Below, in pieces: positions 12,416-51,280 of a stretch of 62,655 bases of DNA (positions are counted from its first letter, which is position 1; the number at the start of each line of letters is the position of its first letter). The stretch is from NCBI RefSeq assembly GCF_018977255.1, contig NW_024705204.1, forward strand, positions 1 through 62,655. The letters are read 5' to 3'. The position numbers and the translations under genes were made by a program. This DNA is from Callorhinchus milii (taxonomy: Eukaryota). Below the pieces are notes generated by a model. That model did not search any database and was not told the DNA's origin. It worked only from the letters and a program-made list of their open reading frames with translations.

Positions 12416-12778
12416 CTGTGTAACAAATGAAACGGTGCATTTGATAACAGGGTTCAGCCACCCATAAGCCGGCCTTCACCACCACGCAATTCAACCGTCC
12501 GCTCTTAGGAACCATCTTGTCTCTCCACTGTGAATATCTGAATTTGTCTCCATTTGCCCAACTCCATCCAGCACTCGACTTCTTGTCACTGTACAGCCCA
12601 ATCCACGTGGATGTGTTTCCAACAAACAATGGAAAAGTCGCGTTATATTCCTGCTGGTTCCGAATGCTAATAAGATCTGTGCAGTGATTGCGGCAATAAG
12701 TTAGGGCATCCATCCAGTTTTTCCATCGGTCTATCCGGTAATATACTCTGTTTAGAGTTTTAATGCTTGGGTATAAAT
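12416..12778 (-). CDS. CTLD cassette exon J (last), 363 nt
   Basis: ctctctacag acceptor; DLYPSIKTLNRVYYRIDRWKNWMDALTYC...TWIGL...WRDKMVP...C...GLWVAEPC...ICYT; donor G|GTAGGA. Confidence 0.9.
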
Positions 12779-13260
12779 CTGTAGAGAGATTAGGTCAGCA
12801 TAAAGGTTTACTAGTCTCCCTTTGGCCTCTTGATTGACAACTTTAATAGTTATCGAGAAAATAGTAGGAATGTGTGTGGTGGAGCGACCACCAGCACAGA
12901 CAGCTTGAGGAAAGAGAAGGAAATTGGATCGGATAACATTGCCATCGTGCAGCACAGTCACAGCATGAGAAAAGCAGGGAGATGGGACAAACAACATAGA
13001 CTCAAAGCACGAGCGAGAATCTTTGTCATGGAGCCCACAGTGCAGAATCAGCATATTTGACCTATCGAGCCTATGGTGGTAGTCTATCCTCCGTATGACT
13101 AATATTCTTTCATCTGTACCTGTAACAATAGGAAAGATGGAACCAAGACAGGTTTCGGTGGGTGATGCGAAGTCCTGGAGCCGCTGTCAGAGGCAGACAA
13201 TCGATTGGTAAGTGATTTATTTTGGAAAACATGGATTAATCTGTCAAAGTAGCTTCTCAC

Positions 13261-13374
13261 CTGTTGCAACATTGTTCTCGGTGTTGGAAACAAATGTTTT
13301 TTCATTTGAAGGGAATTTTCCAGGTCGTCGATCACTCACTTGCAAGTTACTGGGAATGGATTGTTTCTTCAAGT
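13261..13374 (-). CDS. Stalk/linker exon, 114 nt, phase 1-1
   Basis: ttttctttccatag acceptor; DLKKQSIPSNLQVSDRRPGKFPSNEKTFVSNTENNVAT; donor GCAACAG|GTGAGAA. Confidence 0.7.
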
Positions 13375-13812
13375 CTATGGAAAGAAAATCTCTATTCACA
13401 CAATTTAATTCCTAAAATCACAAGAGATTTGAATCTTCCACTCATTGCATCTCATTTTTCCACCTTACTTACTCTACTATTTTATCATTAGAGCATCGCG
13501 TGGTTTCTGAAATGAGTCCACTGTCTAAACCAACCAGTCTTCCTGGTACCCTTTTGAGATGTAATTACCTTTTGAGGTTTAAGATATGTCTGGTGTCTGT
13601 TCTGAAAATGTTCTTCACATCCCTGAACTTACTGTCTTGAATGACTTAGCTCCCAGAGATATTTTGAAGGTTGAACAGCCCTAAAATATCCATTCATTCC
13701 TCCTAACTGCACATGACAACAACTCTCTGTAACAAGAGAACTGGGCTAGAAAGTAAAAATAGCTGTTTCTGGGAATTCCGTCCCACAATATATTCATCAT
13801 TCTCAATCTTAC

Positions 13813-14184
13813 CTGTATAGCAAACAAAACTGTATGACTGAAAGCAGTTTTCAGAAAACCACAGGCCTTTGTTGACTGCCACACAAATGAAATTAGATTG
13901 TTGATAAGCATTCTCCTGTTCCTTGTCCATCCAATGTTTGGAACTGAACTGATCTCCATTTGTCCACCTCCACCCGGCAACTGTACGGTTAACATTATGC
14001 AGCCCAATCCACAGAGGTGTATCTCCACCAGAGAGATGAAGAGTGATCTTTTGCTCTTCTGGGCTCCGAACGCTGACAAGATCCGTATAGTGAGTGCGGC
14101 AGTAATCCCAGGCAATGGTCCAGTTTTTCCGTCGGTCAATCCGATGATATTCTCTGTCCGCAGTTTTAATGCTTGGGAAATAAT
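13813..14184 (-). CDS. CTLD cassette exon I, 372 nt (missed as one ORF by the track)
   Basis: tctcttcccag acceptor; DYFPSIKTADREYHRIDRRKNWTIAWDYC...LWIGL...WMDKEQEN...C...GLWFSENC...VCYT; donor G|GTAAGA. Confidence 0.9.
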
Positions 14185-14859
14185 CTGGGAAGAGATCACA
14201 TCAAACAATCAGTTGAAGCTCCTCTGGCTCGGGTACCTCAACAAATCCATTTTGAGATCCTTTTCCTCACCTTCAAATCTTCCTTTCCTAACTATAAAAT
14301 GTCATCCAACCCTACTCTCCTGCACGCACCCAATTCACCATTGACTCTGGGCTACTGTTTTCATTGATTGATTTGATTTCTTTCTTTAGTGATCAGCCAC
14401 CAACCATTTCCTCTGGAACTCGCTTGCAAATTTTTGTTACGTTGCTCTATTTTCAACCCCCCGCCCCACTCCTCCTTCCCCCCACTCCTACCCCCCACAC
14501 CTCAAGTAGGCTGGACCAGTTACCATCTCCCATTTGGGTCAGAAGTTTGTCAGTTGGAACCTGATATTCTAGCTCAGGCGGACAATTCAGTGCAATGCTA
14601 ATAAACGCTTCATTTATCAAAGTTACCGTCCTTCAGATGATTAAACCAGGTCCGACTTTCCTGCACTTCAGTTGTTGGTAAAAATCCTGTGATACTTTTG
14701 GAAAAGAGAGATTTGCCCTTGCCAACAATTCTTCAGGAAATTGGTAATTTCATGTCTACCCGTGGGGACCTTGTTGTGCACAAATCGGCACAAACACAGT
14801 CGTCATTTTAACTGCAGATGATAGAATTACCTGCGAAGAGTTTGGAAAAGCTTTGGTCT

Positions 14860-15510
14860 CATCAGTTTTGTGACCAGGGTTCTCTCAGCCTCCTCGTCCT
14901 CCTTGACCTCTCTGCTGCTTTTGACACCGTAGACCACTCTATTCTCATCCACCGCCTCTCCTCTCATTGCAACCTCCACAGCGCTATTCTTGACTGGTTC
15001 AAATCGTACCTCTCACACGGCCTGCGCTTAATCTCCTCAAACGGCTTCTCCTCTAGCCCCCGGACCGCTTCATGTGGCGTTCCTCAGGGCTCTGTCCTTG
15101 GTCCCCTCTTCTTCAATATCTATCTGCTCACTCTTGGTGGCATCATCCGCAGATATGGAGTCAACTTCCACATGTATGTGGATGGCGCCAAACTCTACAT
15201 TTCTGCCTCAATCTTTGACTCCAGGACCCGCTGCTGTGCTGACAGAATGTCTCTCAGACATCAAGTTCTGGATGAGAGCCAACTTTCTTCAGCTGAACAA
15301 CAAAAAAACGAGGCTCTCCAGATTGACTCCCGTCAGCGCCTCCACCCTCCTCCTTGCTAAGCCAGTCCAGAACCTTGGGGTCTTGTTTGACCCTCAACTA
15401 TCCTTTCTATCCCACATCTGCGCCATGACCCGCTCTGCCTTACCCTACCTCCACAATGTCGCCCGACTACAGTTCAAGCTCCTGGTCCTTACCTTGAAGG
15501 CCCTCCACGG
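14860..15510 (+). mobile_element. Older L2 RT fragment
   Basis: [16 protein letters not shown]...[10 protein letters not shown]...FHMYVDG. Confidence 0.9.
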
Positions 15511-15519
15511 TCTTGCTCC

Positions 15520-18500
15520 AGTCGGGGAGCGGCGGCAGGACAGCGCGGGGAGGAGCCTGGGCCTACTGACCCAGGTACTTAAACTCGACGCCGGAGCGAG
15601 TTCAGCCCCGGGGGCGGGGGAGGGGGAGGTGTGGGAGCGGAGCGGAGGAACTGCTGACGTCATAGATTAGTTTTCAGGGGCGTGCGCGCGCAAAAAAAAA
15701 AAAAAAAAAAAACCTCTGCGCGCCCCCACCCTCCAGGGCTCACATCAGAGCCCACTATGGTCCTGTTGGGTTCGCTGCCCCAATCTACGGGATAATGCCA
15801 TCCACCTGACCGCTCCCGGTCCCCGCGTGCGCACTATGGCTGCCGCTTTGACCCGAGCCCCCTCACCTCCTCCCTCCTGCCCCCCTCCTCTCTCCCCCCA
15901 AACCCTCCCCTCTCTGCATCTCTCCCGCTCTCTCCTCCTCTCTCTCCGTCCCTCTCGTCTTCTATCCCCACTTGACCCTCCCACAACCTCCCTCTGCTCC
16001 AGCCTGGGAATCCTCCGCCGGGCTCACCGTAGCACTCAGCGTTGGCTGTCCAGCAGCAGCCACACCAACTGCCCCATTCCCCACTACACTCGCCAGCCAC
16101 CCCGGACACAGACCCGGGGAGTCAACCTCTCCTCCCTCATCCCCATTCCCCCCACCCCTGCCTCACAACCTGGAGCCCCCTCCCCTCCCACACACCCTTC
16201 TGTCAACCGCTCCCTCCACATCGGACTGCAAAATGTCCGCTCCCTCTGCAACAAGGCCCTGGTCATCAACGATCTCATCCTTGATGAGAACGTTGATATC
16301 ATGGCCTTAACAGAAACCTGGCTCACCCCAGGCGACACCTTCCCCCTCACGGAGGCCACACCACCCGGCTACACCTCCCACCACATCCCCCACCCCAACC
16401 GCCGTGGCGGTGGTGTTACCCTTATCTCAAGGACACCACTTGCCCTATCTCCTTACTCCTCTGGCTCTTTCCCCTCCTTTGAGCACCTCACCCTCTCCCA
16501 CCCCTCATTCCTCTCCCTTAAAATCCTCCTCCTCTACCGGCCCCTAAAACCTCTCCCACCTTCATCTCTGACATTTCAACACTCCTCACATCTCTTTGCC
16601 TCTGCTCTGATCGCCTCATCATCCTGGGCGACTTTAACCTACACTTCACCCCCTCCTGCTCCATCTCCACAGACTTCTCTTCCCTGCTCTCCTCACTCAA
16701 CCTTTCCCTACACATAAACTCCCCCACTCACAGTCACGGCCACCCACTCGATTTGGTGATCACCCGGGGCCTCAGTGTCTCGGATGTCACTATTACCGAC
16801 AAGGCCATCTCTGACCACTACTTCATCTCCTTCACCACCTCCACCCCCCTCCCCACCTCCACCAGACCCACCACCATCTTCTACCGCCCTTGGAAGAAGT
16901 TACCCCCACAATCCCTAACCGATGCCTTGGAGTCCTCTGAACTCCTCTCCCTCTGGCCTTCAACCCTCACCGACCCCTCTTCTCCTCTCTCCCTCCTCCA
17001 CAATACCCTCTCCTCCACACTCGATACTCTTGCCCCCATCACTTCCCGCACTGTCTCCTACTCCCGCTCCTCCCCCTGGTACACCACCCACCTCCGCTCA
17101 CTGAAAAGCCAGGTGCGGGCTGCTGAACGCACCTGTGTCAAATCTGGCCTAACGGTCCACCGACAAATCTGGCTGGACCTCCTCAAAATTTACCGCTCCA
17201 CTCTAGCCTCGGCCAAGTCGTCCTTCTACTCCAGGATAATCCTGGAGGCGAAGAACAACCCCAGGCTACTGTTTTCCACCATAACCCGACTCCTCCGTCC
17301 CCCCCGCCACCCCGCGCAGGTCATCTCCTCCAACCTTCACTGCGAGGAGATGCTGGATTTCCTTGAATCCAAGATCAAGGGAATCCGCTCCGCGGTCACT
17401 TCCCCTCCAACTTCCACCAACCCCCCACCCCCTCACTCCCACACTCCGACTCCTACCCATCCTCCCCTACACACCTTCGTACCCGTTTCCCCACCCTCTG
17501 TCACTGAACTCATCCTATCCCTAAAACCAACCACCTGCTCCCTTGACCCCATCCCCACTCCACTCCTTATCTCCCAGCTCCACTTTCTTGCCCCACATAT
17601 CACTGACATCATCAACCTGTCCCTCTCCTCTGGCTCTGTCCCCATTCCCTTAAAAACTGCCATCATCACGCCCACCCTGAAAAAACCCTCCCTTGATGCG
17701 TCGCAGCTATCAAGCTACCGGCCCATCTCCAACCTCCCCTTTCTCTCCAAGGTCTTGGAAAGAGTTGTCGCCTCCCAACTGCGCTCTTTCCTTTCCACCC
17801 ATTCTCTTTTCGAACCCCTTCAGTCAGGTTTCCGTGCTGCCCATAGCACAGAAACTGCCCTGGTCAAGGTCACCAATGATATCCTGACCATCTGTGACCA
17901 GGGCTCCCTCTGTCTCCTCGTCCTCCTCGACCTATCGGCAGCATTCGATACGGTCGACCACGCTATCCTACTCCACCGCTTGTCCTCCCACCTCAACCTT
18001 CAAGGCACTGTCCTTGAATGGTTTAGGTCGTACCTTTCTCACCGTCTTCACTTTGTCTCGACGAATGGCTTCTCCTCCACCCCCCGTACTGTCTCATGTG
18101 GTGTCCCTCAGGGCTCTGTCCTCGGTCCCCTCCTCTTCACCCTCTATATGCTCCCCCTTGGTGACATCATCCGCAGACATGGAGTTAACTTCCACATGTA
18201 TGCGGATGACACCCAACTCTACCTTTCCTCCTCTACTCTCAACTCCACGACCACCGATGTCCTGACAGCTGCCTGTCCGACATCGAGTCCTGGACGAGAG
18301 ACAACTTTCTTCAGCTCAACGTGCGAAAAACCGAGGCCCTCCTGATTGGCTCACGTCAGCGCCTCCGCACCTCAGGCGCTGACACCATCAGCATCCAAGG
18401 CTGCACTCTCCACCTCTCAAAGCCAGTCAGGAACCTCGGCGTTTTGTTCGACCCTGAGCTGTCCTTTCTCCCTCACATCCGCACCACAACTGGCACCGCC

Positions 18501-19277
18501 TTCCATCACCTCCGGAACATCGCCAGACTACGGCACTACCTCACCCCTCACGCTGCTGAAACCCTGGTCCACGCCTTTGTCACCTCAAGGCTGGACTATG
18601 GGAACTCTCTCCTCGCCGGCCTTCCCGGCACCTCCCTCCACAAGCTGCAGGTCATTCAGAACTCTGCAGCTCGTGTACTGTCCCGCACCAGACACCGCGA
18701 CCACATCACTCCCACCCTCGCTCGCCTCCACTGGCTCCCCATCCCCCAGAGGATTGATTTCAAGATCCTCATCCTCACCTACAAGGCCATTCACGGCCTC
18801 GCTCCCTCCTACCTCTCCAACCTACTATCCCCCTACCTACCTGCCCGTACCCTCCGTTCCTCCGGCTCCGGTCTGCTCCACGTCCCCCGCCCCAATCGCC
18901 CTACCATTGGTGGTCGGGCCTTCAGCCCCGAGGCTCTGGAACTCTATCCCCCAGTGCCTTCGCCGCTTCCTCCCTCTCCTCCTTCAAGGCCGGTCTCAAA
19001 ACCTTCCTCTTTGACTGAGCCTTCAGCTCCCCTCTCGACTCTCTTCCCCCTTCTCGCTCCCTCCCATCCCTCCCCTCACCCTGACCATTTCCCTCCTCCT
19101 CGCTCCCTCCCCTCCCCTCACCTTGACCATTTCCCTCCTCCTCGCTCCCTCCCCTCCCCTCACCTTGACCATTTCCCCCCCCGCTCGGGTCATGACCCAA
19201 CTGTGCAGCGTCTTGGGACGTCCTCCTGACGTGAAAGGCGCTTTATAAATGGAATCTTGTTGTTGTTGTTGTTGTTG
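15520..19277 (+). mobile_element. Near full-length L2-clade LINE (APE endonuclease + reverse transcriptase, frameshifted)
   Basis: GLQNVRSL...MALTETWL...GGGV (endonuclease); [17 protein letters not shown]...[38 protein letters not shown] (RT). GC-rich 5' end, (TTG)n tail at 19256-19277. Frameshifts near 16540, 18270 and 18930. Confidence 0.93.
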
Positions 19278-19545: not shown

Positions 19546-19911
19546 CTTCGTAGCAAGTGAACCAGTGTGTTTGGTTGCAGTAATCACCAAACCACAAACC
19601 ATTGCTCATAGCGACACATGTCCTGGAACCTGGGGATGTATTCATCTTCTTATCTCTCCAATGGGTGTAGTTGAACCTGTCTCCATTTACCCACTTCCAA
19701 CCATCAGCAGTTTGATTAATGTTGTACAGCCCAATCCAGAGAGGATGATCTCCATCAAAGAGCTTAGACATCAGGCTATGCTCTTCTGGGCTCCCAATAC
19801 TAATAAGATCAGTGTGATAATTTTGACAGTAATCTCGGGCTTCACTCCAGTTTTTTCGTCGGTCAACCCGATAATACTCTCTGTCTGCTGGTTTTGAGCT
19901 TCTCGACAGAT
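19546..19911 (-). CDS. CTLD cassette exon H, 366 nt, KMN at the EPN position
   Basis: ctcttttgctag acceptor; KNWSEARDYC...LWIGL...WRDKKMN...C...GLWFGDYC...TCYE; donor G|GTAAGA. Confidence 0.9.
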
Positions 19912-20447: not shown

Positions 20448-20798
20448 CTTTGTAGCAAGTGAAAAGATAACTTTCATTGCAGTAATCACTGAACCACTGA
20501 CCATTTCTCACAGCGACACAGATCACAGAGTCCAGATAATCATTTGGCTCTTTATCTTTCCACTGCGTATAATTAAACTCGTCCCCACTTATCCATTTCC
20601 ACCCGGTAGTGGACACTTTATTATTGTACAGCCCGAGCCAGAGAGGTTCATCTCCAACAAATAGCTGAGATGTGAGCCTGTGCTCTTCCCAGCTACGAAT
20701 ACTGGTAAGACTTGTGTAATGGGTGCGGCAGTAATCCTGAGCTTCAGTCCAGTTTTTCCTTTGTTCAATCCGGTGATACTGTCTGTCCGTGGCCAGAT
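20448..20798 (-). CDS. CTLD cassette exon G, 351 nt, EPN motif
   Basis: cttttcgccag acceptor; KNWTEAQDYC...LWLGL...WKDKEPNDY...C...GQWFSDYC...TCYK; donor G|GTAAGA. Confidence 0.9.
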
Positions 20799-21994: not shown

Positions 21995-22745
21995 CAATCT
22001 ACACAACAACAACAACAAGGTTCCATTTATTGAGCGCCTTTCACGTCGGGAGGATGTCCCAAGGCGCTGTACAGTTGGGTCAGGACCCGAGCAGGGGGGG
22101 AAATGGTCAGGGTGAAGGGAGGGAAGGGAGGGAGCGAGGAGGGGGTAGAGAGTCGAGAGGAGAGCTGAAGGCACGGTTGAAGAGAAAGGTCTTGAGACCG
22201 GCCTTGAAGGAGGAAAGGGAGGAAGCGGCGAAGGCACTGGGGAATAGAGTTCCAGAGCCTCGGGGCTGAGATGCTGAAGGCCCGGCAACCGATGGTAGGG
22301 CGATTGGGGCGGGGGATGTGGAGCAGATCGGAGCCAGAGGAACGGAGGGTAGGTAGGGGGATAGTAGGTTGGAGAGGTAGGAGGGAGCAAGGCCGTGAAT
22401 GGCCTTGTAGGTGAGGATGAGGAACTTGAATTCGATCCTCTGGGGGATGGGGAGCCAGTGGAGGGGAGCGAGGGTGAGTGAGGGTGGGAGTGATGTGGTC
22501 CCGAAGCCTGGTGCGGGACAGTACACGAGCTGCAGAGTTCTGAATGACCTACAGTGTGGAGGGAGGTGGCGGGAAGGCCGGCGAGGAGAGAGTTCCCATA
22601 GTCCAGCCTTGAGGTGACAAAGGCGTGGACCAGGGTTTCAGCAGCGTGAGGGGTGAGGTAATGCCGTAGTCTGGCGATGTTCCGGAGGTGATGGAAGGCG
22701 GTGCCAGTTGTGGTGCGGATATGGGGGAGAAAGGACAGCTCAGGG
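21995..22745 (-). mobile_element. L2 3' fragment
   Basis: LHWLPIPQRIEFKFLILTYKAIHGLAPSYL and a (TTG)n tail. Similar L2 3' pieces at about 1-185, 10000-10200, 10590-11210, 25560-26080, 27750-28860, 39400-39790, 40420-41190, 42260-42565, 42730-42930, 52420-52895 and 62100-62310. Confidence 0.9.
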
Positions 22746-22882
22746 TCGAACAGAATAGAGTTCAGCTCTACTCATACTCAATTCAGCTGAGTAGCTCAGT
22801 CGCTTCCTTCTGTTTGGCAATTGGTGTAACTGTGGGAAAAGGCAAGTTTGCCACTCTTCAAAATCGCATGTCCTTGTCTTAC

Positions 22883-23245
22883 CTTTGTAGCAAATGAAAC
22901 GATAAGTTTGATTGCAGTAATTATCAAGCCACAGACCATTGCTCATAGTGACACAAATCACAGAAGACACAGAATCATTTGGCTCTTCTTGCCAATGGGT
23001 GTAATTGAACGTGTCTCCATTTGTCCATTTCCACCCAGCGTTCGACCCATTATTATAGTACAGCCCAATCCAAAGAGGGGTGTCGAGGTCAAGCATCTGA
23101 GATGTGAACCTGTGCTTCTCTGGATTCCGGCTGCTGACAAAATCACTGTGTTGATTGCGGCAGTAATCCCCATCTTCTGTCCAGCTTTTCTGCTTGTTGA
23201 TATGTAGGTATTCTCTGTACCAGGGCTTATCAACTTGAGACACAT
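22883..23245 (-). CDS. CTLD cassette exon F, 363 nt, EPN motif
   Basis: tttaatcag acceptor; KSWTEDGDYC...LWIGL...WQEEPNDS...C...GLWLDNYC...ICYK; donor G|GTAAGA. Confidence 0.9.
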
Positions 23246-23858: not shown

Positions 23859-24218
23859 CTTTGTAGCAAGTAAACTGGTAAGTTTGATTGCAGTCATTAT
23901 TAAGCCACAGAGCGTTGGTCACAGCAACGCAGGTGCTACCCAGATTATCTGGCTCTGCATGTTTCCAGTCATCATTATTGAAACTGTCTCCATTTATCCA
24001 CTTCCACCCTGCAGTGGAGCTCTTATTATTGTACAGTCCAATCCAGAGAGGCGCACCTCTGCTAAACAGCTTGGAAGTCCTCTTCTGCTCCTCTGGGTTC
24101 CTAAAGCTGGTAAGGTCTGTGTAGAAATTACGGCAGTGATCACGGGCTTCACTCCAGCTTTTCTTTTGGTTAACCCTGTGATATGTTCTGTCTTGTGGCT
24201 TTGTGCTCATAGACGGAT
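23859..24218 (-). CDS. CTLD cassette exon E, 360 nt, EPD motif
   Basis: ctcttgttag acceptor; KSWSEARDHC...LWIGL...WKHAEPDN...C...LWLNNDC...TCYK; donor G|GTAAGA. Confidence 0.9.
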
Positions 24219-24749: not shown

Positions 24750-25115
24750 CTTGGTAGCAAATGAACCAGTATGTTCGTTTGCAGTCATCATTAAACCACA
24801 CGCCACTCTTCATCGCGACACAGACCTCAGAACCGAGATGTGCATTCAGCTCATTATCTTTCCAGTGTGCGTAACTGAACTCGTCTTCGTTTATCCACTT
24901 CCACCCAGCAGTAGTGTGGTTACTGTTGTAAAGGCCAATCCAGAGAGGTTTGTCTCCATCGAACATCTTAGATATAATCTTCTGCTCCTCAGCGCTCCGA
25001 ACACTGATAAGATCCATGTAATGATTGCGGCAGTAATCCCGCGCTTCAGTCCAGTTTTTGCGTTGATCTATCCAGTAATAATCTCTGTGCGCTGGTTTTG
25101 TGGTTGTGGACAGAG
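24750..25115 (-). CDS. CTLD cassette exon D, 366 nt, ELN motif
   Basis: ctcaccag acceptor; KNWTEARDYC...LWIGL...WKDNELN...C...GVWFNDDC...ICYQ; donor G|GTAAGA. Confidence 0.9.
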
Positions 25116-27359
25116 CTGGTGAGTGTAGAAGACAACAGAAAATAGGTGCAAGTTCCTGCAGTTTCAATTTCTTCTAACTTTAATTTACATGTGGTATATT
25201 AAATTCTCAGGTTTTACATCCTTTCCTCATCCTTATTCTTTCTACCTGACTTATTCTCTCCTCAGAATACTCTTTAAAGTTCTACCTCTTCAACTGTCTT
25301 TTGGTCCACAGCATTGAATCTTCCCTTTGCCTATACAGTTGCCTCCATTAAACCATCCCCTGTGATTTCAGCTAAGCAACGGATGTGGATGCTTTTGATG
25401 GTGACAGATAGTGAAGAGTGGGACTGCAGCCATTTGTGGTTTCTAGAAATACATTCTTACCTGGTAAATGATTGCTCTGTGAGCTTGGAGGTATCGTTGG
25501 TTTGGGCAGAGATTTTACTTTTGTAGAAAGTTTTATGCGCTGTGAAGATGGTGGCTTAAGAACTGTTGAGGGGAGAACGAGACAGCATATAAGTCCTTAT
25601 AAGATGCCAAAGCTCTTGTTCAAGCCTCTCGACTGCACTACTCAAATGCCCTCCACTGCCCTCCACACCAAACTCCCCTACTCCACAATTCACAGAATTC
25701 AACTCATCCAGAACTTCACCACCTGCATTCTCACTTGCACTAAACTCTGCAACCAGATTACCCCAATCCTTGCCCAAACCCACTGGCTCCCTGGTCACAG
25801 AGCAGATCAACTTCAAGATCCTCACTCTAGTGTTTAAATCCCTTCACTCGTTGACACTCCCATCTCTCCAACCGCTTCTCCCCTCGCAGCACTACCCGCT
25901 GCCTCCACTCTCCTGGCTCCAGCCTCAGCTTGAGTATGAAGACCTTCCTCTTCGACCGTGCCTATGGTCACCTTGCTGCACCCCTGGCTTGGCATCGGGC
26001 TCCACCATTGTTAAGCACTCTCGAACACTGCCCGGCGTGAAGAGCGCTACATCAATGCAAGTTGTTGTTGCTGTTGTTGTTATTAGACTGGCATTCTGTT
26101 GAGCGTACACTGAACAAGTTAAGCCAAAACGACTCACAGCCTGTGTCACTGGAGGTATTGACCGGGACTTTAGAACTCTTTTAGGCGGAATCATAAAATC
26201 ACAGAATTATACAGCGCAGAAGCAGACCGATCGGCTCATCTGTCGTGTCTCTTTGAAACAAGATATCTTGTTCAATCCCACTCTCTCCTCATGGCTCTGC
26301 AAACTTGTCCTCCCGCAATAATTATAGACTTCAATCTCAAAAGTTGTTATCGAATCGGCTTCTCCTGTCCTTCCAGGCGGAAGTCAAAGATTTTGCTAAA
26401 AGGTGGTCATTGCAGCGTAAAATAAGTTATGCCAAAGGGCATTGAGTGTTTTGTCAAAATGAAGCGTGTTATCTGGGGATTCAATGGAAATGGAACGATG
26501 AGCGGGCAATTGGAATGAGCTTGTATTGTTCCAATTCAGGAACTGATACCAAAAGAGATTTAATGAGCCCAGGGGAGGAAGAGAAGTAATAATAATAATA
26601 ATAATCCTTTCATTTCATATAGCACCGTTTCACGCCTTCGAGACGTCTCAAAGAACTTCTCAGAATATACTGTAAAATTAATTGATTGTATATATTGTGG
26701 AAGAAACGCAGCAGTCGGTTGCACATAGCAGTGTCCCACAAACAGTCGTGAGTTGACTGAAAAATTATAATTTTTAAAAAATATATATTTTTCAAGGAAA
26801 TAATACCCACAGAAAAGCGATCCGTGAATGACGAGCACCGGCTTCCTACTTACTGCTAGTCAATAGTGGCATGTTAACTATTCCCACTGGCGGTGGGTCG
26901 ATAGCCCGAGGACCCCGATTTAAAATAGTTGTTAAAAGAAACAGAGGGGAGGGGAGGAGAATTTTTTTTCACGCAGTGTGTTGTTCAGATCTGGAATGCA
27001 TTGCCTGAAAGGCTGGTGGAAGCCGACTCGATAACAACATTTAAGAGAGAAGTAGATAATTATTTGAGGAGGAAGACTTTGCAGGGCTATGGGGAGAGCG
27101 CGGGGTGGGAGTGGGGTTGATTTGGGTGGCACAAGGCGCCGACGTGATGAATGGTCTTCTTTTGTGCTGTTTAATTCTTTGATTCTGTGTGGAGTCAGGA
27201 AATTTGCGCACCATATCACACTGCCGGGAATCAAACCAAGGTCTCTTACTTGCGAAATGAGGGCTCTAACCAGTGAGTTGCAGGACTGTGCCGATAGAAG
27301 ATGTTAGCATGACAGGACAGAACTGGATGTCATACTAACATCATGCTCCCCAATCTTAC

Positions 27360-27713: not shown

Positions 27714-29165
27714 CTGGTGAGAGAAGGTAACATTGGGAAGTGAGATGTCCAAATTCGACTTACACCCAGTCTCAAATAGGACTGGCTCATCAAATCCATT
27801 TAAGACCTCATCCCTCCCAGTGCACTGCATATTCTTCCAAAACTTTAGAGGGCCCATACTCTCATCTTTTCTATTCAAGATCAATCCTTCCTTCCATTGC
27901 CACCATCAACTATTCAGTTCCATGATCGTCCCATTCATAGATCCCAATCCAAGATCTTCTTCCATGCATTATAAAACATTCTGGCTCCACCTTTGAGTCC
28001 AGAACTACTTCTGTCCTGAAAGAATGTCTCTCAGACATCAAGTCCTGGATCAACTAACTTTCTTCAGTTGAACGTCAACAAGATTGGTTGGTTCCCATCA
28101 GTGCCTGATGGCATCACCATCAATGGTTGCGCATTCCACCTTAATCAGCCAGTCAAGAACCTTAGCGTCTTTTGACCTCAACTACCCTTTCTACCCTACA
28201 TTCGTGCCATGACCCGCTCTGCCTTCTCCCATTGCCCGACTCTGCCCACTCTCTCATGTAGTAGGGCACCGAAACCCCCATACACGCCTTCATAATATCC
28301 CGGCTTCACAATGCAAAAATCCTGCCTGTCGGCATCCCCAACTCCTCCATCCATAGACTTCAAATCATCCAGAACTCTGTAACTGGTGTCCTCTCCCACA
28401 CCAGGCCCTGTGACCCTATCACTCGCATCCTCGCCCCATCCCACTGGCTTCCCAACTCACACAGGATACAGTTCAAGATCCTGGTCCTTACCATCAAAGC
28501 GCTTTATGGCCTTGCTCCCCCTACCTCTGCAACCTCCTAACCCCCTACTAACCTGAGCACTCCCTCTGCTCAGCATGCTTCAGCTTTTTCACGTTCCCCA
28601 ACCTTGACCGCTCTACCATTATTGGTCGAGCCTTCAATCATTCTACCCCCGCCTTCTGGAACTGCTTCCCACAATCACTCCGCCTCGCTCCTCCCTTGCC
28701 TCTACCTTCAAGACCCATCTTAAGACCCCCCCCTCTTCGACCGTGCCTTCGATCACCCTCCTTTCCCCCCTGCCTCCCCGATCCCAACCCCCAGCTTGGG
28801 TCGAAAACATTGAATATCTAATGCCTTGGGACATCATCCTGACGTGAAATGCGCAATGCAGATGTGTTTTTGTTTTTGGTAGTTGTGGGACTTGGATTTT
28901 GGTCAATGTTTCTTCATCTTCATTGACTATTGCTTTCCAATATGACTAAGAATCTAAGAAAGGATCATTTCTCTGTGACATTAACAGGTGTGAAGTGTGC
29001 TATATAAATGCAAGTTCTTGTTCGTTATGCACGAGGGAGCGTTTGGAAATGTCTGCTATTGTTAATATGGAGGGCAAGACTGTGTCGCATTTTATAATGT
29101 CTGAAACATGTCCTTACGTTCCATGGAATAAAACAAGGTGGGATTTTTCAAATCTGGGCGAATTC

Positions 29166-29240
29166 CTGTTGCAAGAGGACTTACAGGCTTCAGAGATATT
29201 GGCAATCGCTCACTGAAAGTGGAAGAATCTTCTATGACTT
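29166..29240 (-). CDS. Possible short linker exon
   Basis: Strong acceptor ttttttccctctctcctcag; EVIEDSSTFSERLPISLKPVSPLAT ends GCAACAG like the other linkers but is followed by GA rather than GT. An internal GTAAGT (exon end 29185) would give phase 0. Confidence 0.4.
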
Positions 29241-29696: not shown

Positions 29697-29818
29697 CTGT
29701 CAAAAAACGATTGCATATGAAATAGATTCAAATCTCAATGCCTCCCAGCACAGCAGCAGCTGGAGTTTAAGATCTGTGGCAATGCAGCGATTCGCTGTCC
29801 TGAGAAATAAGTCCATAC

Positions 29819-29932
29819 CTTCTATGGAATTATTTTGAGTGATTGTAAGATCCAAAATTGTGTGTTGATTTTTTTCTGTAGGTCGTGGCGAGGAAGGTGT
29901 TGGTTCACGGGCAATTGCAGATTCACGAAGTT
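29819..29932 (-). CDS. Pro/Ser/Thr-rich stalk exon, 114 nt, phase 1-1
   Basis: ttttctttgtctctccacag acceptor; ELRESAIAREPTPSSPRPTEKNQHTILDLTITQNNSIE; donor G|GTATGG. Confidence 0.7.
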
Positions 29933-30252
29933 CTGTGGAGAGACAAAGAAAATAACATATTTTATTGCTGATTTGTCAATCTGTTTGGTTTATAACCTGC
30001 TGTCTATCAAACTCTCACATTCTACATGCTTAAGATATGAACAGAATCCCAGAAACAGGACGGTGATGGACTAACGATTGGCATTCCACCTGAAAACAGC
30101 AGATGAACCATGTCTCTTGTTGTGACTCCAACATATACTCAATTATTTCACTGAATTGGATATGCCATTATAATTAACTTATCTAATTTGTTTTATGAAG
30201 ACAGCCTGCTGTTTTTGCAAAGGTATTGCGGAGAAGGGGAGAGAATAAAAAA

Positions 30253-30337
30253 GGAAGGAAGGAAGAAAGGAAGGAAGGAAGGAAGGAAGGAAGGAAGGAA
30301 GGAAGGAAGGAAGGAAGGAAGGAAGGAAGGAAGGAAA
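30253..30337 (+). repeat. (GGAA)n microsatellite
   Basis: Direct reading. Confidence 0.97.
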
Positions 30338-30589
30338 GAAATTTCTTCTGGAGTTCTCTGATAAAATCACGTACCCTTGCTTTATCTCTTCTTGTCTTCC
30401 AAATGATGCCATAAACCTGTCTGTTAGACTGTGCTTTTGGTTTGTATAATTGATGACCCTAGCTCTTGACTGCTCTCCGTAAGATCTGCAAAATGCTTTG
30501 AGAAACCCAGACTACAATAATGGCGCAATACATTTGTTGGTTAGTACAAATTGGGTGGAGATTTGTAACTATTACAATTTGTAATTGTA

Positions 30590-30917
30590 ATAATAATAGT
30601 AAAAATAATCCTTGCATTTGGTATAGCGCTTTTCACGTCGGGAGGACGTCCCAAAGTGCTTTACAGAACACACTGTAAAGCGAATTGACTGTATATTTGT
30701 GGGCGAACGCGGCAGCCAATTGCACACAGCAATGTCCCACAAACAGTAGATTGAAAATGACCAATTTATTATTGTTCTTTTTTGTTTTGGAGGGATTATT
30801 ATTAGGCTCTGTGTGGAGTAAGGAAACTTGCCCAAGGTTTCGCCCTCCGCCTGGGATTGAACTCGGGTCTCTCACTTGCAAAGCGAGTGCTCTAACCACT
30901 GAGCTACAGGACTCCAT
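30590..30917 (-). mobile_element. tRNA-derived SINE
   Basis: TAGCTCAGTGGTTAGAGC...GAGTTCAATCC head and (AAT)n tail. Confidence 0.9.
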
Positions 30918-31439
30918 TGTAATTATTAAGGGCCACTTAATGATTTATGGATTATGAAAAATAAGTTCTTGCCCTCCTCAGAATTGATTTTAGAGATGGG
31001 AAGCTGTAAAGGAGTACTTGGCATTTCTTCTGTTTTAAAAAGGATTCTGGGCTGTATCAATGTCAGTGTTAGCTCACTAGGAGTTGAAGATTTCTGAATG
31101 TCTGTCGAGACAGATGAAACATCACACCCATTGTATTTGACCTAATTCGATTTGTTTTATCAATTATTTCATAATACTAAACTTTCAGTTGCTATGTCGA
31201 CTCACGTTCAATGTTAAAAGATGGAAATCATAGCCACAAGTGAATGTGGAGGATACAATCTGCAAATTGTAATGGCTGTCTATTTTGTGGACTAAGTACG
31301 GCAACCAATCGCACACAGCAGTGTCCCACAAACAGTCGCGGAGTGAGTGAGTGACCAAATTATACATTTTTTGGAGGATGGTAATTTGAGAGGAACGAAG
31401 TAAAGTGTTTCATCTTTGCTCACAGAATCTCTGCTAAAT

Positions 31440-31757
31440 TGGACGAGATGCCAACAGACTCAGCTGTATAGACAACACAGATTAGGGCCCTGAGGTAATC
31501 ATTGGGCTCCATAAATTTCCAGTTTGTTTAATTGACCTTGTCGAAATTTGTTCACATCCAATGTTGATTGGATCGCTTATGATTGTACATCCCGATCCAG
31601 AGAGGCGTAGATCTGTCAATCAGCTCAGATATAAACTTGTTCTCCTCTGTGTCCCAAATACTAAGATCATGTAATCGCAACAGCAGAATTACAGTGCTCG
31701 AGTCCAGTTTATCTTTTGGTGGATGCTCTATCATTTGTTTACTTATCAAAGGCTCAT
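31440..31757 (-). pseudogene. CTLD pseudo-exon (frameshift, stops, 3' end lost)
   Basis: LWIGMYNHKRSNQHWM*TNFDKVN*TNWKFMEPNDYLRALICVV; acceptor atcag present, no donor seen. Left boundary approximate. Confidence 0.8.
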
Positions 31758-32087
31758 CTGATAATAAATCACATCAGAAAATAAGTTCAAGCTCCAGTTG
31801 TTTGAGTTGTTCAAGGCAGATCCAATCTAAGATCCTTACCAGCAAATTCCTTCTCAGAATTTATCGATATAAATTCTGCCTGCTCTAATCTGTAACTTTA
31901 TCTCTATCTTAAAATATTTCTGTTCAAATAGTATACCTCTTGGATAAAGGTTGCTATTGTTAATATTGAAGCGAACCCTATGTTTTAAATAAGTGTGTTT
32001 GAAATAAGTAATGTGAAAATACATCCGTATTTTATGATGCTCAAAAGAGCAGCGCAAAATCATGCTCAACTCTCTTCCCGATCTTAC

Positions 32088-32451
32088 CTTTCTGGCCCAT
32101 GAACTTGTATGTTTGATTGCGGAAATCATCAAACCACAGCCCATTGTGCACAGCCACACACATTGGAGAACTTAGGTTATCATTTGGTACCATAAATTTC
32201 TAGTGTGTATTATTTATTTGTTCTCCAGTTGTCTACATCCAGTTGGCTTTGGAGCCCTTTTTTATTGCAGAGCCCAATCCAGAAAGGCAAATATTTGTCA
32301 AACTTCTTGGAAATAAATCCGTCCTCATAGTTCTGAATGCTGATCAGATTTGTGTAGTGGATGCGGCAATAAATCAGGGCTTCAGTCCAGTTTTTCTCTT
32401 GATCAATCAGGTAACATATCCTGGTTACTGACTTATTCTTCACTGCAGGAT
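32088..32451 (-). pseudogene. CTLD pseudo-exon (frameshift, two Trp-to-stop changes) with intact AG/GT
   Basis: 364 nt. KNWTEALIYC...FWIGL, then a +1 frameshift, TAG at both W positions, VPND...CVAVHNGLWFDD, last two Cys lost; donor G|GTAAGA retained. Confidence 0.85.
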
Positions 32452-32839
32452 CTGATGAGAATCCATGAGACAAAGAGTCAGACTTCAGTGGAATTTGAGT
32501 AGATGTGAATCAGGTATAAGATACCTCTCCTTATTTCAAAACTTCAAACCCTATCCAATTTGACCACTCCCTTTCCCATGCAATATTCTGATTTTAATTT
32601 CAAACCCATCCCCTTCACTTTTCTGCTGTTGTCTTCTGCATGATGCTCACTTTGTCTTCCCACTCGCAGTGACACCTCCCTGGGCCATTAGGTCCTTATC
32701 CAATTGAACCATCCCAACAGTTTATTTTCCTTCATGCCCAACAAATTTGTCAGTTAAAGATTTTCTGCAAATAATGGGCTAATTCATCACTTGGGAATAC
32801 GTTGTTAGCTGATTCTGGGTTATTTTGAGAGTTGAAAAG

Positions 32840-32938
32840 TTTAAAAGTTGTGACGAGATCTTTCTTTGTTGCAATACCGTTTATATGGATTTGGGAGCTT
32901 GCCTGATGGTTCGCTGGGAGTTGCAGATATACGAAAGT
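32840..32938 (-). pseudogene. Decayed stalk exon with mutated acceptor (AG to AA)
   Basis: ACTTTCGTATATCTGCAACTCCCAGCGAACCATCA aligns with the start of the 29932 stalk exon (AACTTCGTGAATCTGCAATTGCCCGTGAACCAACA), but the acceptor reads cacAA. Left boundary approximate. Confidence 0.55.
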
Positions 32939-33160
32939 TTGTGAAAACAGACAGAACAAAATGCGTTCTTATTCGGTTGGGTATGCAACCAGGTTCTTCA
33001 ATTGGGTAATCCAGGATGCATATTTACTGTACCGAAGGGTGGAGGTGAATCAGATTCTGACTTCAATGATGGAGGTAAGTATTCTTCCCATTCAGCTGGG
33101 GGGTGGGGGGTCGCAGGTGAACCAAGTAGAAAATTGATAACTCTGGACAGAAGTTCTCAC

Positions 33161-33268
33161 CTGTTGCCAAATTAGTGTTATTCAGAGCTATGCCTGAAGC
33201 TTTTTCTATTGTGGAACAGATTGAGGCTTCTAAAGAGATCTGGCTGGAGAGTAAAGATTTCTTCTCAT
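33161..33268 (-). CDS. Stalk/linker exon, 108 nt, phase 1-1
   Basis: tctccacag acceptor; DEKKSLLSSQISLEASICSTIEKASGIALNNTNLAT; donor GCAACAG|GTGAGAA, identical to the donor of the 13.3 kb linker. Confidence 0.7.
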
Positions 33269-33666
33269 CTGTGGAGACACAGCCCGTACCATTATTTGCC
33301 TGGCGGTTTGCTTGGTATACTGTGCAGAGAGCGGGAGATGAAAAGAGAGACAAAGTGCGAAAGAAAAAGACGGTGATAATTCATCAGACCCATTGATCTG
33401 GATTTGTCCGCTAAATTCTCCTTCCCTTGTTATCTCAGTCTCTCCTTTTCTTCAAAGCCCTCTTAGAAAATTGCATTTTCCATCCTGTTTAGGTTTTCAC
33501 AATTGAATATCACTTTTATCATGTCTGCTTTCATTAACACCTATTGAAGGTTTCCAGATGCTCATCCCGTGTGAGAGGAATTATATTGGTCCAAGCATTT
33601 GGTATCATTGACAGACACAAATGAAGAGGTTGACATCGCACAGTGATTCGCTGGCACTGGTCTTAC

Positions 33667-33786
33667 CTGCTGGACTTCGTAACAGGGGATTCTTCCAAGC
33701 TGTGAGTGAAACTTTTTTGGATGGAAGCTTTGCAGGTCGTGGAGACCTGAACGTTGGATTCATAGGAGGGGAAAATCTCCGAAGGT
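33667..33786 (-). CDS. Pro/Ser/Thr-rich stalk exon, 120 nt, phase 1-1
   Basis: tttctttctgtctccatag acceptor; DLRRFSPPMNPTFRSPRPAKLPSKKVSLTAWKNPLLRSPA; donor G|GTAAGA. Confidence 0.7.
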
Positions 33787-34334
33787 CTATGGAGACAGAA
33801 AGAAATTGATATGCCGTATTGTTCAGCTGACATTCTGCTTGCTACACTTAAATTAAGCTCCACCTATTATATTACACGGGCTTTGTACTGTTTGTGAGAA
33901 AGATGAAGTGATAATCAAGTGACTCCTCTTAAGGTATTTATGTTTATGGGCAACACTTATTCGAAAGATGTCTTGTTTTTGTGAGATCTACCAAAGATTC
34001 AATAATTTCAGTTAGTTCCATACCTCACTGTGATCAACATATCTACTTATTTTGATGAAGGAAGGAAGCAAGCAAGAAAGCAGGCAGGCAGGCAAGCAAG
34101 CAATTCTATCCAGGCATCCAATCTAGCAACCATCAGGACCATTTACTTTCGACTTCTCTTCTCGGATTTCAATTGGAAAAAGTATTTTGGAGGAGTGAAA
34201 TAAATGGTTTGGAGTCAACCTCTGCAAATTGAGATTGGAGTATTCAGCTCGATTGAAAGAGTCAGCCACAGGATGGCCTCCTCCTGTCCTGCAAGGAAGC
34301 ACATAAAGCTGACCATTCCACTGCCTGAACTTAC

Positions 34335-34700
34335 CTTTGTAGCACATAGACTGGTATGTTTTATTGCAGTAGTCATCAAACCACAAGCCATTGATCACAG
34401 CGACACAGCTTTCAGAGTTAAGGTAATCATTTGGCTCCATATATTTCCACTGCGTATAATTGACCGCTTCTCCATTTGTCCACTTCCACGCGGCAGTGGA
34501 ACCCTTTTTACTGAACAGCCCGATCCAGAGAGTGCGATCTTCAACAATCAGCTGAGACATGTACTTGGCCTCCTCTGGACTCTGGATACTGACCAGATCT
34601 ACGTAGTGACTGCGGCAGTGATCCCGAGCTTCAGTCCAGTTTTTCAGTTGCTTGATTGGGTAATATTCTCTGTCCACAAATTTATTCTTCAAGGCCAAAA
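34335..34700 (-). CDS. CTLD cassette exon B, 366 nt, EPN motif
   Basis: ctag acceptor; KNWTEARDHC...LWIGL...WKYMEPNDY...C...GLWFDDYC...MCYK; donor G|GTAAGT. Confidence 0.9.
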
Positions 34701-36028
34701 CTAGATAGAAACCATCACATCAGCGAACATTATAGATTCAAGATTCATTATTGTTAAACACTGAAGGCATAACCTTCACATAACTTTACAATAATAATCC
34801 CTCCAAAAAACAAAACAATAATAAATTGGTCATTTTCAATCCACGACTGTCTGTGCGACACTGCTGTGCGCAATTGGCTGCCGCGTTCGCCCACAAATAT
34901 ACAGTCAATTCACTTTAAAGTATATTCTGTGAAGCGCTTTGGGATGTCTAGAAGACGTGAAAAGTGCTATATCAAATGCAAGGATTATTATTTTTATTAA
35001 TATCACTCCTTCCTACCTCAGTAAAATTGTCTTGCTTTGTTTTCGTACAATCACCTTTATGTAAGCTATTGCTCATTCTTCTGCCCTATCATTTTTGGCC
35101 AGACTTTTGGCCACCATTTCCCTATCTAATGGAAGTACGGTACTTCCAAATCGCTCAACCTTGCTGCCTCCATTTTCACCCAACCCCCATTTGAAAGTTA
35201 TCTCCCTTAATTCAGCTTTTCTTCAATAGCATTAAATCTTTCACCCAAAGTGCTGTACAAGTGCAATTTGTTATCCATTAAACTTCAGATGACCATTTGG
35301 GCAATGGCACAAACAGAGAGAACTGACAAATGTAAAAAATATTTGTCAAAAACAGCAGCAAAAACACCTAAGGAAGTAACATCTGTACATTGCCCCATAC
35401 TGAAAAGTGTTACATTGATGAATCAATGAATGAAGACATGGAGATATGTAACCTGCTGAGGAAATCTTTGAAAAGTTGGAGTATTTCAAAGCTGTAATTT
35501 GAGTGTTTTCTGATACAGAAAGGTGTATGAGCTGTGAAGACTTGTTGGTGGTCGAAGCATTTTGAAGATCTGTGAAGGTAAAAGGAGTAAAACAGCTTTA
35601 ATGATAACAATCCTTGCATTTTATGTAGTGCCCTCTCATGACAATGAGACGACTCAAAGTGCTTCAAAGTATAGTATGCTGTAACATCAATTGGCTGTAT
35701 ATTTTGTGGGCGAAACTCAGCAGCCAATTACACACAGAAGTGTCTCACAAACAGTTGTGAATCAAGTGACCAATATTTGGGGTGAAAGAGTTATTACCCC
35801 CGGAAAACGATCTACCAATTATCTAACGATAGGTTCCTGGCTGCTGGTAGGTAAACCGAGACGTGTGGAGAAAGGAAACTTGTCCAAAAGTTCACCTTGT
35901 CCAGGTGTTCTCATTGCAAGGTGAGTGCTCAAACCACTAAGCTACGGGACGCAATAATGGATATTCAGTTAAGGCTACAAGGACTCTATCAAGATCCCAA
36001 TCCAAGAAATTGTATGTGTCAATCTTAC

Positions 36029-36400
36029 CTTCATAGCAAATGAACAAATGTGTTTGATTGCAGTAAGCGGGAAACCACAGTCCATTGTTTATAGCCACAC
36101 AGATCCCAGAAGTTCGGTTACCATTCATCTTTTTATCTTTCCAGTGCATATGATTGAATGCATCGCCATTGGTCCATTGCCATTGCCATCCAACAGTGGT
36201 TAAATTTTTACTGTACAGCCCAATCCAATACGATACTCCATAATTGAGCAGACGGGCGGTTTCATAATTTTCCTTTGGGCTCCGGATGCTGACAAGATCC
36301 GTGTGGTGAGCGCGGCAGTAACCCCGGGCTTTTGCCCATTTTTTCTTTTCATTGACCGTGTGATACTTTCTGTCCAAGGATGGAACAATCTGGGGCAGAG
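36029..36400 (-). CDS. CTLD cassette exon A (first after leader), 372 nt, phase 1-1
   Basis: ttttccag acceptor; WAKARGYC...YWIGL...WKDKKMN...C...GLWFPAYC...FICYE; donor G|GTAAGA. Confidence 0.9.
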
Positions 36401-36917
36401 CTGGAAAAGGGCAAATGCGTCAGTCTTGGACAAAAACGACATCGACTTGGACAAAAACAACTTGCATTATATAGCATCCGTCGTGAAGGTTAGCATCCCA
36501 GAGCACTTGACAATATAGATAGTGGATGGTTCTGGTAGAAAGAGTCAGAAAAGGAGGAGGTCATCTTAAAACTAAACCACTGAGCACGAAGATCAGAAGC
36601 AGAGAATTGGGAGAATGTGGTCAAAACTAGTGCAGAAGGCCATAATCGAGATAATAATAATCATAATAATACTAATCATTGCATTTAATATTGTGCCTTA
36701 TCACAGCTTGAAGACGTCTCAAAGCACTTCACGGAATATACTGTAAAGTTAATTGACTGTATCTTGTGGGCAAGATATGTAAATTGGAAATGGATAGACA
36801 CTTAGGGGGACAGGGGTTAGGAGATCTCCTGCATTGGTATAATAAACTGGTGGAACAGACTGAGTGGGCGCCTATCCTGATGTTCCACTGGAACGGACAT
36901 GATAAAAATGGGCTCAC

Positions 36918-36963
36918 CTTGAGTAAGAAGGAGGAGGGGTAAGAAAACTCGCATTTTACTCAT
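36918..36963 (-). CDS. Signal-peptide (leader) exon of the multi-CTLD lectin gene
   Basis: MSKMRVFLPLLLLTQ then phase-1 donor G|GTGAGC; in frame with the first CTLD exon (ALPQIVPSLDRKYH...). Confidence 0.8.

Positions 36964-51239: not shown

Positions 51240-51280
<41 letters not shown>

Follow-up and report, generated by a model that had tools for sequence, protein, structure and literature searches.

A single-exon C-type lectin cassette array in Callorhinchus milii that probably encodes one long secreted protein

We analyzed a stretch of 62,655 nt of genomic DNA from Callorhinchus milii (contig NW_024705204.1, assembly GCF_018977255.1), referred to below as the window, which contains an array of exons for C-type lectin-like domains (CTLDs); all positions are given in window coordinates. 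The window is matched at ~100% by the Ensembl/UniRef models A0A4W3GH16, A0A4W3JCH6 and others, and by an old NCBI model, all of them from C. milii. Our results suggest that the array belongs to one minus-strand gene, extending from ~36963 to 6763, that probably gives rise to a single long secreted protein with ten CTLDs and not to a receptor repertoire diversified by splicing, which was one of two readings offered in a preliminary description of this DNA. Domains were assigned with Pfam, the window was searched for cassettes with tblastn, and protein models of paralogs served as probes for the stalk exons, the tail and the leader.

Exons and splice sites of the lectin gene

A tblastn search of the whole window with one cassette yielded ten full-length CTLD matches and three partial or decayed ones, all on the minus strand between 12414 and 36368, and the translated cassettes are recognized by Pfam as Lectin_C with E-values of 1e-16 to 1e-18. 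Stalk and tail exons were located by homology to the C. milii paralog models XP_007910316.1 and XP_007910097.1. When the cassette and six homologs were used as tblastn queries, no further CTLDs or exons were found in the window and only the tail exons fell outside 12.3-36.4 kb. The exons and their decayed relatives are listed below in the order in which the minus strand is read; a slash in a splice sequence marks the exon boundary, and percentages are identities to paralog sequences.

36918 to 36963, minus strand: leader (signal-peptide) exon, MSKMRVFLPLLLLTQ, 46 nt, phase-1 end G/GTGAGC; 63% to the leader of paralog P0279
36029 to 36400, minus strand: CTLD cassette C1, 372 nt, phase 1-1; 71% to the same-type paralog domain
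34335 to 34700, minus strand: CTLD cassette C2, 366 nt, phase 1-1; EPN, Glu and Asp kept; 82% to its paralog counterpart
33667 to 33786, minus strand: stalk exon S_a, 120 nt, phase 1-1, Pro/Ser-rich; 56% to the stalk after C2' in XP_007910097.1
32801 to 32939, minus strand: decayed stalk exon S_b, frameshifted and without its acceptor AG
32089 to 32446, minus strand: decayed CTLD cassette psi3, with a mid-exon frameshift and stop codons; 74-76% to P0279_d2 / P0177_d1 in two reading frames
31471 to 31665, minus strand: decayed CTLD cassette psi4, ~65 codons left, stop codons; 72% to P0279_d3
30973 to 31101, minus strand: stalk exon S_c, 129 nt, phase 1-1, open frame, GC donor; 81% to the P0279 stalk
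29819 to 29932, minus strand: stalk exon S_d, 114 nt, phase 1-1; found in the old NCBI model P0242
29550 to 29664, minus strand: CTLD remnant psi5, short
29118 to 29240, minus strand: stalk exon S_e, 123 nt, phase 1-1, ending C/GT; its join to C3 reads ...SMEQMNSP..., as in P0242
27360 to 27713, minus strand: CTLD cassette C3, 354 nt, phase 1-1; 82% to its paralog counterpart
24750 to 25115, minus strand: CTLD cassette C4, 366 nt, phase 1-1; 81% to P0126_d3
23859 to 24218, minus strand: CTLD cassette C5, 360 nt, phase 1-1; 76% to its paralog counterpart
22883 to 23245, minus strand: CTLD cassette C6, 363 nt, phase 1-1; the sampled paralog models contain nothing close to it
20448 to 20798, minus strand: CTLD cassette C7, 351 nt, phase 1-1; 76% to its paralog counterpart
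19546 to 19911, minus strand: CTLD cassette C8, 366 nt, phase 1-1; 83% to its paralog counterpart
13813 to 14184, minus strand: CTLD cassette C9, 372 nt, phase 1-1; the sampled paralog models contain nothing close to it
13261 to 13374, minus strand: stalk exon S_f, 114 nt, phase 1-1; 63% to the stalk preceding the last CTLD of XP_007910316.1
12416 to 12778, minus strand: CTLD cassette C10 (the last), 363 nt, phase 1-1; 72% to its paralog counterpart
7716 to 7789, minus strand: tail exon T_a, GCAQLSQKELAPIEAVKSQVKANQK, entered in phase 1 and left in phase 0; 59% to the XP_007910316.1 tail (E = 1.7e-7)
6763 to 6858, minus strand: terminal coding exon T_b, with the stop codon TAA at 6765-6763 and AATAAA at 6234, ~530 nt downstream

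The leader exon starts with the ATG at 36963, ends with the G at 36918 and is spliced directly to the first CTLD. Each intact cassette is preceded by a polypyrimidine tract and an AG acceptor and has phase 1 at both boundaries, and the donor directly follows the CY-x motif as G/GTAAGA (eight copies) or else as G/GTAAGT or G/GTAGGA. The splice sites are near-consensus, with AAG/GTAAGA-like donors in nine of the ten cassettes. All five intact stalk exons (S_a, S_c, S_d, S_e and S_f) are likewise phase 1-1. The frame of S_c is intact, but its donor at 30973 reads G/GCAAGA instead of GT; this is a GC-AG intron of the rare kind or else the beginning of the loss of the exon.

Cassettes C4, C5, C7 and C8 have in common a motif of the form (C)TTG..CCTATTTTCTG, located ~40 nt upstream of their acceptors; it is not found at the other six cassettes. 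It probably represents a conserved branch-point and polypyrimidine region left by more recent duplications. Its four copies are as follows.

25116 to 25156, minus strand: acceptor-upstream motif of C4
24219 to 24260, minus strand: acceptor-upstream motif of C5
20799 to 20840, minus strand: acceptor-upstream motif of C7
19912 to 19950, minus strand: acceptor-upstream motif of C8

In the Ensembl model A0A4W3GF.. (P0271), C4 is joined to an in-phase acceptor at 24191/24192, 27 nt inside C5, such that the join reads ...CYQ/DRTYH... and DPSMSTKPQ is left out. Similar in-phase AGs occur just before the D-R-x-Y motif in C3, C4 and C8, and the length of the linker could therefore vary through alternative choice of acceptor.

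The minus strand was also scanned for additional leaders, defined as an ATG followed by a hydrophobic core and a phase-1 donor. No second leader was detected at strict settings, and at relaxed settings the number of hits was equal to that in shuffled sequence, that is, at chance level. Two such hits, at 24661-24565 and 8506-8464, have no homology to any leader and were discarded. Leader peptides of the paralogs match the window at 36999-36910 only. C7 has an in-frame ATG upstream of it (MLIGLAKQISGALTLFSAVNFSP...) that could have marked a leader of its own; this was rejected because the ATG is unique to one cassette, and the similar stretch upstream of C4, C5 and C8 contains none.

Much of the preliminary description is borne out by these results. 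It had reported one leader at 36918-36963 and no second one, which agrees with both the scan and the paralog leader matches; ten intact CTLD exons of 351-372 nt, all phase 1-1 and multiples of 3, whose boundaries and lengths are accurate to the coordinate; and three decayed CTLD exons with several stalk exons, where the disruptions are visible in the sequence and the stalks are confirmed by paralog homology. The interval it assigned to the array, 12416-36963, holds for the exons within it and fails for the end of the gene: an end at 12416 is ruled out by the two tail exons at 7789-7716 and 6858-6763, which carry the gene further downstream to 6763.

Predicted protein and history of the array

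Joining the 18 exons produces one open frame of 1,482 aa. Pfam finds Lectin_C ten times in this model and nothing else; ricin-type, FN2, EGF and Sushi domains were not detected in the same scan, and the preliminary description was thus correct in noting that ricin and FN2 domains are absent. The sole hydrophobic segment is the N-terminal signal peptide, where all the top 19-residue hydropathy windows fall; the hydropathy analysis indicates no transmembrane segment in the 1,482-aa model, and the tail is hydrophilic. Since a signal peptide is present without a transmembrane segment, the product is predicted to be secreted and not to be a membrane receptor. The model contains 30 N-glycosylation sequons.

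The ligand-binding site was assessed by alignment to Endo180 CTLD2. EPN is found only in C2, C3, C6 and C7, with EPD in C5 and ELN in C4; only C2 and C4 have the Glu that precedes the beta-3 Cys; and none of the ten cassettes has the WND Asn, its place being taken by Phe, Leu or Val. The complete set of Ca2+ site 2 ligands (EPN/QPD, Glu, WND Asn-Asp) is accordingly found in none of the ten; C2 comes closest to a complete Ca2+ site and C10 has none. Because no cassette has the full canonical Ca2+/sugar site, canonical Ca2+-dependent sugar binding appears doubtful for most of them. Within the cassette CTLDs, variability is highest in the loop that carries the Ca2+-site residues. An AlphaFold (AF2) model of C2 has a mean predicted local distance difference test (pLDDT) score of 70.8, with low confidence in the region of the binding loop, and a fold search with this model retrieves many CTLDs at a template modelling (TM) score of 0.6-0.67, indicative of a generic CTLD fold without assignment to a subgroup. 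We infer that the protein may act as a soluble, multivalent, glycosylated binding or agglutinating molecule in which ten different domains work in cis.

The cassettes of the array are 66-76% identical to each other in DNA sequence, and the similarity ends within ~40 nt of the exon edges. Pairwise synonymous divergence (dS) is at least 0.66, the median ratio of nonsynonymous to synonymous divergence (dN/dS) is 0.31, and the introns are not alignable; the duplications are therefore old, and purifying selection has maintained the exons.

The relation of the cassettes to other genes was investigated with a tree of 80 CTLDs from the C. milii array, its paralogs and more distant relatives. Other C. 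milii models, 70-83% identical to the array, derive from paralogous loci. Cassettes C1, C2, C3, C4, C5, C7, C8 and C10 each cluster with paralog domains of the same type, with Shimodaira-Hasegawa-like approximate likelihood-ratio test (SH-aLRT) support of 98-99, and these eight of the ten cassettes are 71-83% identical to their paralog counterpart compared to at most 59% to any other cassette of their own array. The order of parts in the paralog models matches as well, namely leader-C1-C2-stalk-(psi3 type) and C5-C7-C8-stalk-C10-tail. Because the paralogs share both domain types and part order, the array would have had fixed, position-specific domains before it was copied into three or four loci. 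The paralog arrays further share the leader type (MTKLLVIFPLLLLIQ), the stalk positions and the Lys-rich tail; they differ in lying at separate loci, in having no C6 or C9 counterpart in the models sampled, and in their intact psi3-5-type cassettes, such that all three cassettes decayed in the window, psi3 among them, are still intact elsewhere. These relations suggest a history in which a phase 1-1 CTLD exon was duplicated in tandem, the whole array was then copied into three or four paralogous loci, and the copy in the window later lost three cassettes and one stalk exon through decay.

The C. milii domains of the array family form one clade apart from the elasmobranch relatives (SH-aLRT 96). 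Another C. milii gene, P0287 (locus L002, unplaced scaffold MU249956.1), has two near-identical CTLDs and a Pro/Thr-rich tail; in the domain tree it branches as sister to the array family as a whole.

Use of the cassettes and alternative readings

In the reading that we favor, the signal-peptide exon would be joined in series to the ten single-exon CTLDs, with the stalk exons as Pro/Ser/Thr-rich interruptions of the series and a short, hydrophilic, Lys-rich tail at the end. The main product would be a secreted, heavily N-glycosylated "string of CTLD beads" of ~1,480 aa without a membrane anchor. Serial inclusion of all cassettes would yield this main product, and occasional in-frame skipping of single cassettes is plausible. 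Public gene models of the window locus and of its paralogs connect neighboring cassettes in genomic order, those of the window locus joining C1-C2-C3, C4-C5-C6 and C5-C6(part)-C7, and the other reading in the preliminary description, a single ten-CTLD protein of about 1,400 aa, fits both these models and the open 1,482-aa frame. Diversity would be encoded in the germline, in ten diverged domains in cis and in arrays multiplied via gene duplication, and regulated splicing would not be its source.

Several observations weigh against the serial reading. The public models are predictions, some with odd junctions. The large protein collection contained no transcript-derived (Logan) product of the window locus, and none of the C. 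milii models for the family of the ten-CTLD gene is more than 571 aa long. The 6.6-kb interval between C2 and C3 holds decayed exons and S_c has a GC donor, and it is therefore uncertain which stalk exons are included. Finally, the paralog model XP_007910316.1 is devoid of C6-type and C9-type domains, which could mean that these cassettes are skipped or that they are missing from that copy.

The headline reading of the preliminary description was a receptor system diversified by splicing in the manner of Dscam or the protocadherins, and neither part of this is supported: the protein model has no transmembrane or cytoplasmic part, and the cassettes have no docking complementarity above shuffled controls and no promoters or leaders of their own. 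Two versions of such diversification can be distinguished. Under regulated combinatorial skipping, isoforms with differing subsets of the ten CTLDs would constitute a variable poly-lectin repertoire. Any subset of exons would indeed remain in frame, as cassettes and stalk exons alike are phase 1-1 and have lengths divisible by 3, and the lack of C6-type and C9-type domains in XP_007910316.1 would fit. However, mosaic proteins of the extracellular space are generally built from 1-1 symmetric modules (PMC6335736). Moreover, tandem duplication of an internal exon requires symmetry and all ten copies inherit it from one ancestor; frame symmetry is hence a by-product of duplication and not evidence of combinatorial use. 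The near-consensus splice sites also speak against regulated skipping, and no common intronic regulatory element was seen apart from the similarity of the polypyrimidine region in four cassettes. In two catsharks, Scyliorhinus canicula and S. torazame, predicted NCBI isoforms of a related gene are without CTLD3, CTLD4, the stalk between them, or CTLD3 together with the stalk, which may be taken in favor of skipping, but these isoforms touch only three adjacent exons and amount to ordinary alternative splicing. We consider regulated skipping unlikely on balance, and its extension to all paralogous arrays, where cell-specific skipping among ten to thirteen cassettes each would generate a large combinatorial repertoire of secreted poly-CTLD proteins, is less likely again; if true, this extension would constitute a splicing-based system of innate diversity in a basal jawed vertebrate, a holocephalan. 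The other version, with one cassette per transcript, selected either by mutually exclusive splicing as in Dscam or by variable first exons as in protocadherins and UGT1A, draws on the layout of the array, whose homologous exons are flanked by a leader and a shared tail. When the leader intron was compared with the 300 nt upstream of each cassette, the longest complementary runs were 9-14 nt, no longer than in shuffled controls (mean 11.5-13 nt), and shared no common docking position. The introns measure 0.5-6.6 kb, so that steric exclusion is impossible, and the cassettes carry acceptors but no ATG, leader or promoter-linked first-exon structure of their own. A product with one CTLD would also be hard to square with the position-specific conservation of ten types across paralogs, and we regard such a choice of single cassettes as extremely improbable.

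Alternatively, the array could be a decaying, unexpressed copy, a unitary pseudogene in the making, with its function left to the paralogs. The disruption of three CTLD cassettes and one stalk exon whose counterparts are intact in paralogs, the GC donor of S_c, the long interspersed element (LINE) in the C8-C9 intron, and the failure to find a transcript-derived protein in the large collection would all be expected of such a copy. Against this, ten cassettes, five stalks, leader and tail remain open over 1,482 codons with intact splice sites, the decayed exons adjoining them gathered stop codons and frameshifts while the intact exons did not, and decayed symmetric exons can be skipped without damage to the frame; we therefore judge a pseudogene to be improbable. 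Nor do several separate genes with a start each, into which the locus is divided by public annotations with models of 240-400 aa, agree well with the detection of a single leader-like exon and a single tail. The divided models start or stop in introns or in the middle of domains, as is typical of fragmented prediction on repeats, which makes separate genes very improbable.

Given the single secreted ten-CTLD protein as the probable product, the gain over the public fragments of 240-400 aa is a corrected gene model with 18 exons and 1,482 aa. There is also a more general caution, in that exon duplication is expected to leave frame-symmetric arrays behind, and such arrays are on their own no sign of diversity made by splicing.

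Surroundings, relatives and comparison with known systems

Downstream of the lectin gene, a 197-aa open reading frame (ORF) at 2184-2777 on the minus strand matches rhodopsin-type seven-transmembrane receptors (7tm_1, 1.2e-9) and represents a G-protein-coupled receptor gene or fragment. On the other side, an intact immunoglobulin (Ig) V-set frame at 48110-48460 on the plus strand (Pfam V-set 1.2e-16) ends with ...YYCALKP and is followed by CACAGTG, 23 nt and ACACAAACT. Because this frame is directly followed by CACAGTG-N23-ACACAAACT, it is a germline antigen-receptor V segment with a recombination signal sequence (RSS) of the 23-bp-spacer type. Weaker V-like ORFs lie at 49655-50104 and 56700-57062, both on the plus strand, and a perfect CACAGTG-N23-ACAAAAACC occurs at 61478-61516 on the minus strand. 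With a V segment, V-like ORFs and an RSS found nearby, the lectin gene adjoins a V cluster of T-cell receptor (TCR) or Ig type.

Repeats are found in introns of the lectin gene. A LINE-type retroelement at 14818-19229 on the plus strand, antisense to the gene, lies in the 5.4-kb intron between C8 and C9 and includes an endonuclease (15827-16717) and a reverse transcriptase (16753-18345); LINE-related fragments are found at 10596-11241, 22095-22755 and 28111-28750. The intron between C10 and the tail exon contains a tandem repeat at 8868-9746 with 40 copies of a 22-nt unit (GGGAACTACCGGCCAGTCAGCC, 95% matches), which gives rise to a spurious plus-strand ORF of 359 aa. Additionally, a repeat of ~330 nt resembling a short interspersed element (SINE) is present in many copies with 79-94% identity, several of them in introns of the lectin gene. 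Besides many shorter ones, the copies are the following.

1866 to 2190: SINE-like copy
2885 to 3230: SINE-like copy
30582 to 30916: SINE-like copy
45337 to 45646: SINE-like copy
51254 to 51588: SINE-like copy
53295 to 53620: SINE-like copy
61118 to 61439: SINE-like copy

The architecture of single-exon phase-1 CTLDs and stalks is found in the three or four paralogous C. milii arrays, in sharks, in rays and in a teleost, and its members are automatically annotated as "mannose receptor 1-like". The elasmobranch members, labelled "macrophage mannose receptor 1-like" in Scyliorhinus canicula, S. torazame, Pristis, Heptranchias, Chiloscyllium and Mobula, resemble the window gene in having a signal peptide, CTLDs (four to seven) and stalks, no transmembrane segment, and an end soon after the last CTLD, as well as single-exon CTLDs ending CY(T/K)-G/GT in phase 1. 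In the Chiloscyllium punctatum gene (L001), for example, each CTLD is one exon with this ending and the stalk exons are separate, and the CTLD-only secreted architecture with signal peptide and stalks and without a transmembrane segment is also seen in P0002, P0282, P0277 and P0272. The elasmobranch proteins differ from the C. milii cassettes in sequence, with 44-49% identity per domain; profile scores per domain are 110-190 bits to C. milii paralogs and 90-130 bits to elasmobranch members, and the best solved CTLD structures score ~50-57 bits per domain against the window cassettes, which places the relatedness within the family above the level of CTLDs in general. Because the C. milii domains form a clade of their own, the ten-cassette array expanded separately. 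The teleost member is a 12-CTLD protein annotated as "lymphocyte antigen 75-like" in Triplophysa rosa (XP_057182988.1, L003), with cyprinid relatives; it shares a signal peptide and single-exon CTLDs of 327-348 nt, and is unlike the window gene in its two alternating CTLD types, its very short introns and its distant relationship of ~58 bits per domain. Since single-exon CTLDs are found in both Chiloscyllium punctatum and Triplophysa rosa, the single-exon phase-1 CTLD array is a trait of a fish family and is not peculiar to the window locus.

The family that automatic pipelines have mislabelled "mannose receptor-like" can thus now be defined as CTLD-only, with one exon per CTLD, and secreted. 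Chimaeras, sharks and rays, and teleosts each show an independent expansion of it. The window gene is a better-defined member of this family, which is already catalogued but unstudied; our search for literature on the CTLD-only array family in elephant shark or sharks returned no study. If its members act as soluble multivalent pattern-binding molecules, they would provide cartilaginous fish with a lineage-specific arm of innate recognition.

The nearest described idea, by description, is group F1 of Fugu, soluble fish-specific proteins, each comprising two or three CTLDs, that were first mistaken for fragments of the mannose receptor (Zelensky & Gready 2004, PMC514892). The likeness consists in these being CTLD-only soluble fish proteins, and the difference in their two or three domains. 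The mannose receptor family itself (MRC1, MRC2/Endo180, PLA2R1 and LY75/DEC-205) shares eight to ten tandem CTLDs with the window gene and provides the best-scoring solved structures by sequence, yet these are level with collectins, CD23 and selectins. The family is defined by a ricin domain, an FN2 domain, a transmembrane helix and a cytoplasmic endocytic tail, all of which the window gene lacks, and its CTLDs are each split over several exons while those of the window gene are single exons. The remark in the preliminary description that genes of the mannose receptor family split each CTLD is valid for the true members of that family and does not take in the widespread fish family of single-exon CTLD arrays. 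Selectins share the single-exon CTLD, and their EGF, sushi and transmembrane parts have no equivalent in the window gene. In layout, the gene also resembles DMBT1 (gp-340, salivary agglutinin), which is secreted and consists of tandem, single-exon, frame-symmetric domains with Ser/Thr/Pro-rich spacer exons; the DMBT1 domains are SRCR domains and not CTLDs, and there is no homology to the window gene. With the Dscam1 clusters and the clustered protocadherins, the window gene has in common an array of homologous in-frame exons, but each of its cassettes is an entire internal exon flanked by strong splice sites, without a promoter or leader of its own and without docking/selector pairing.

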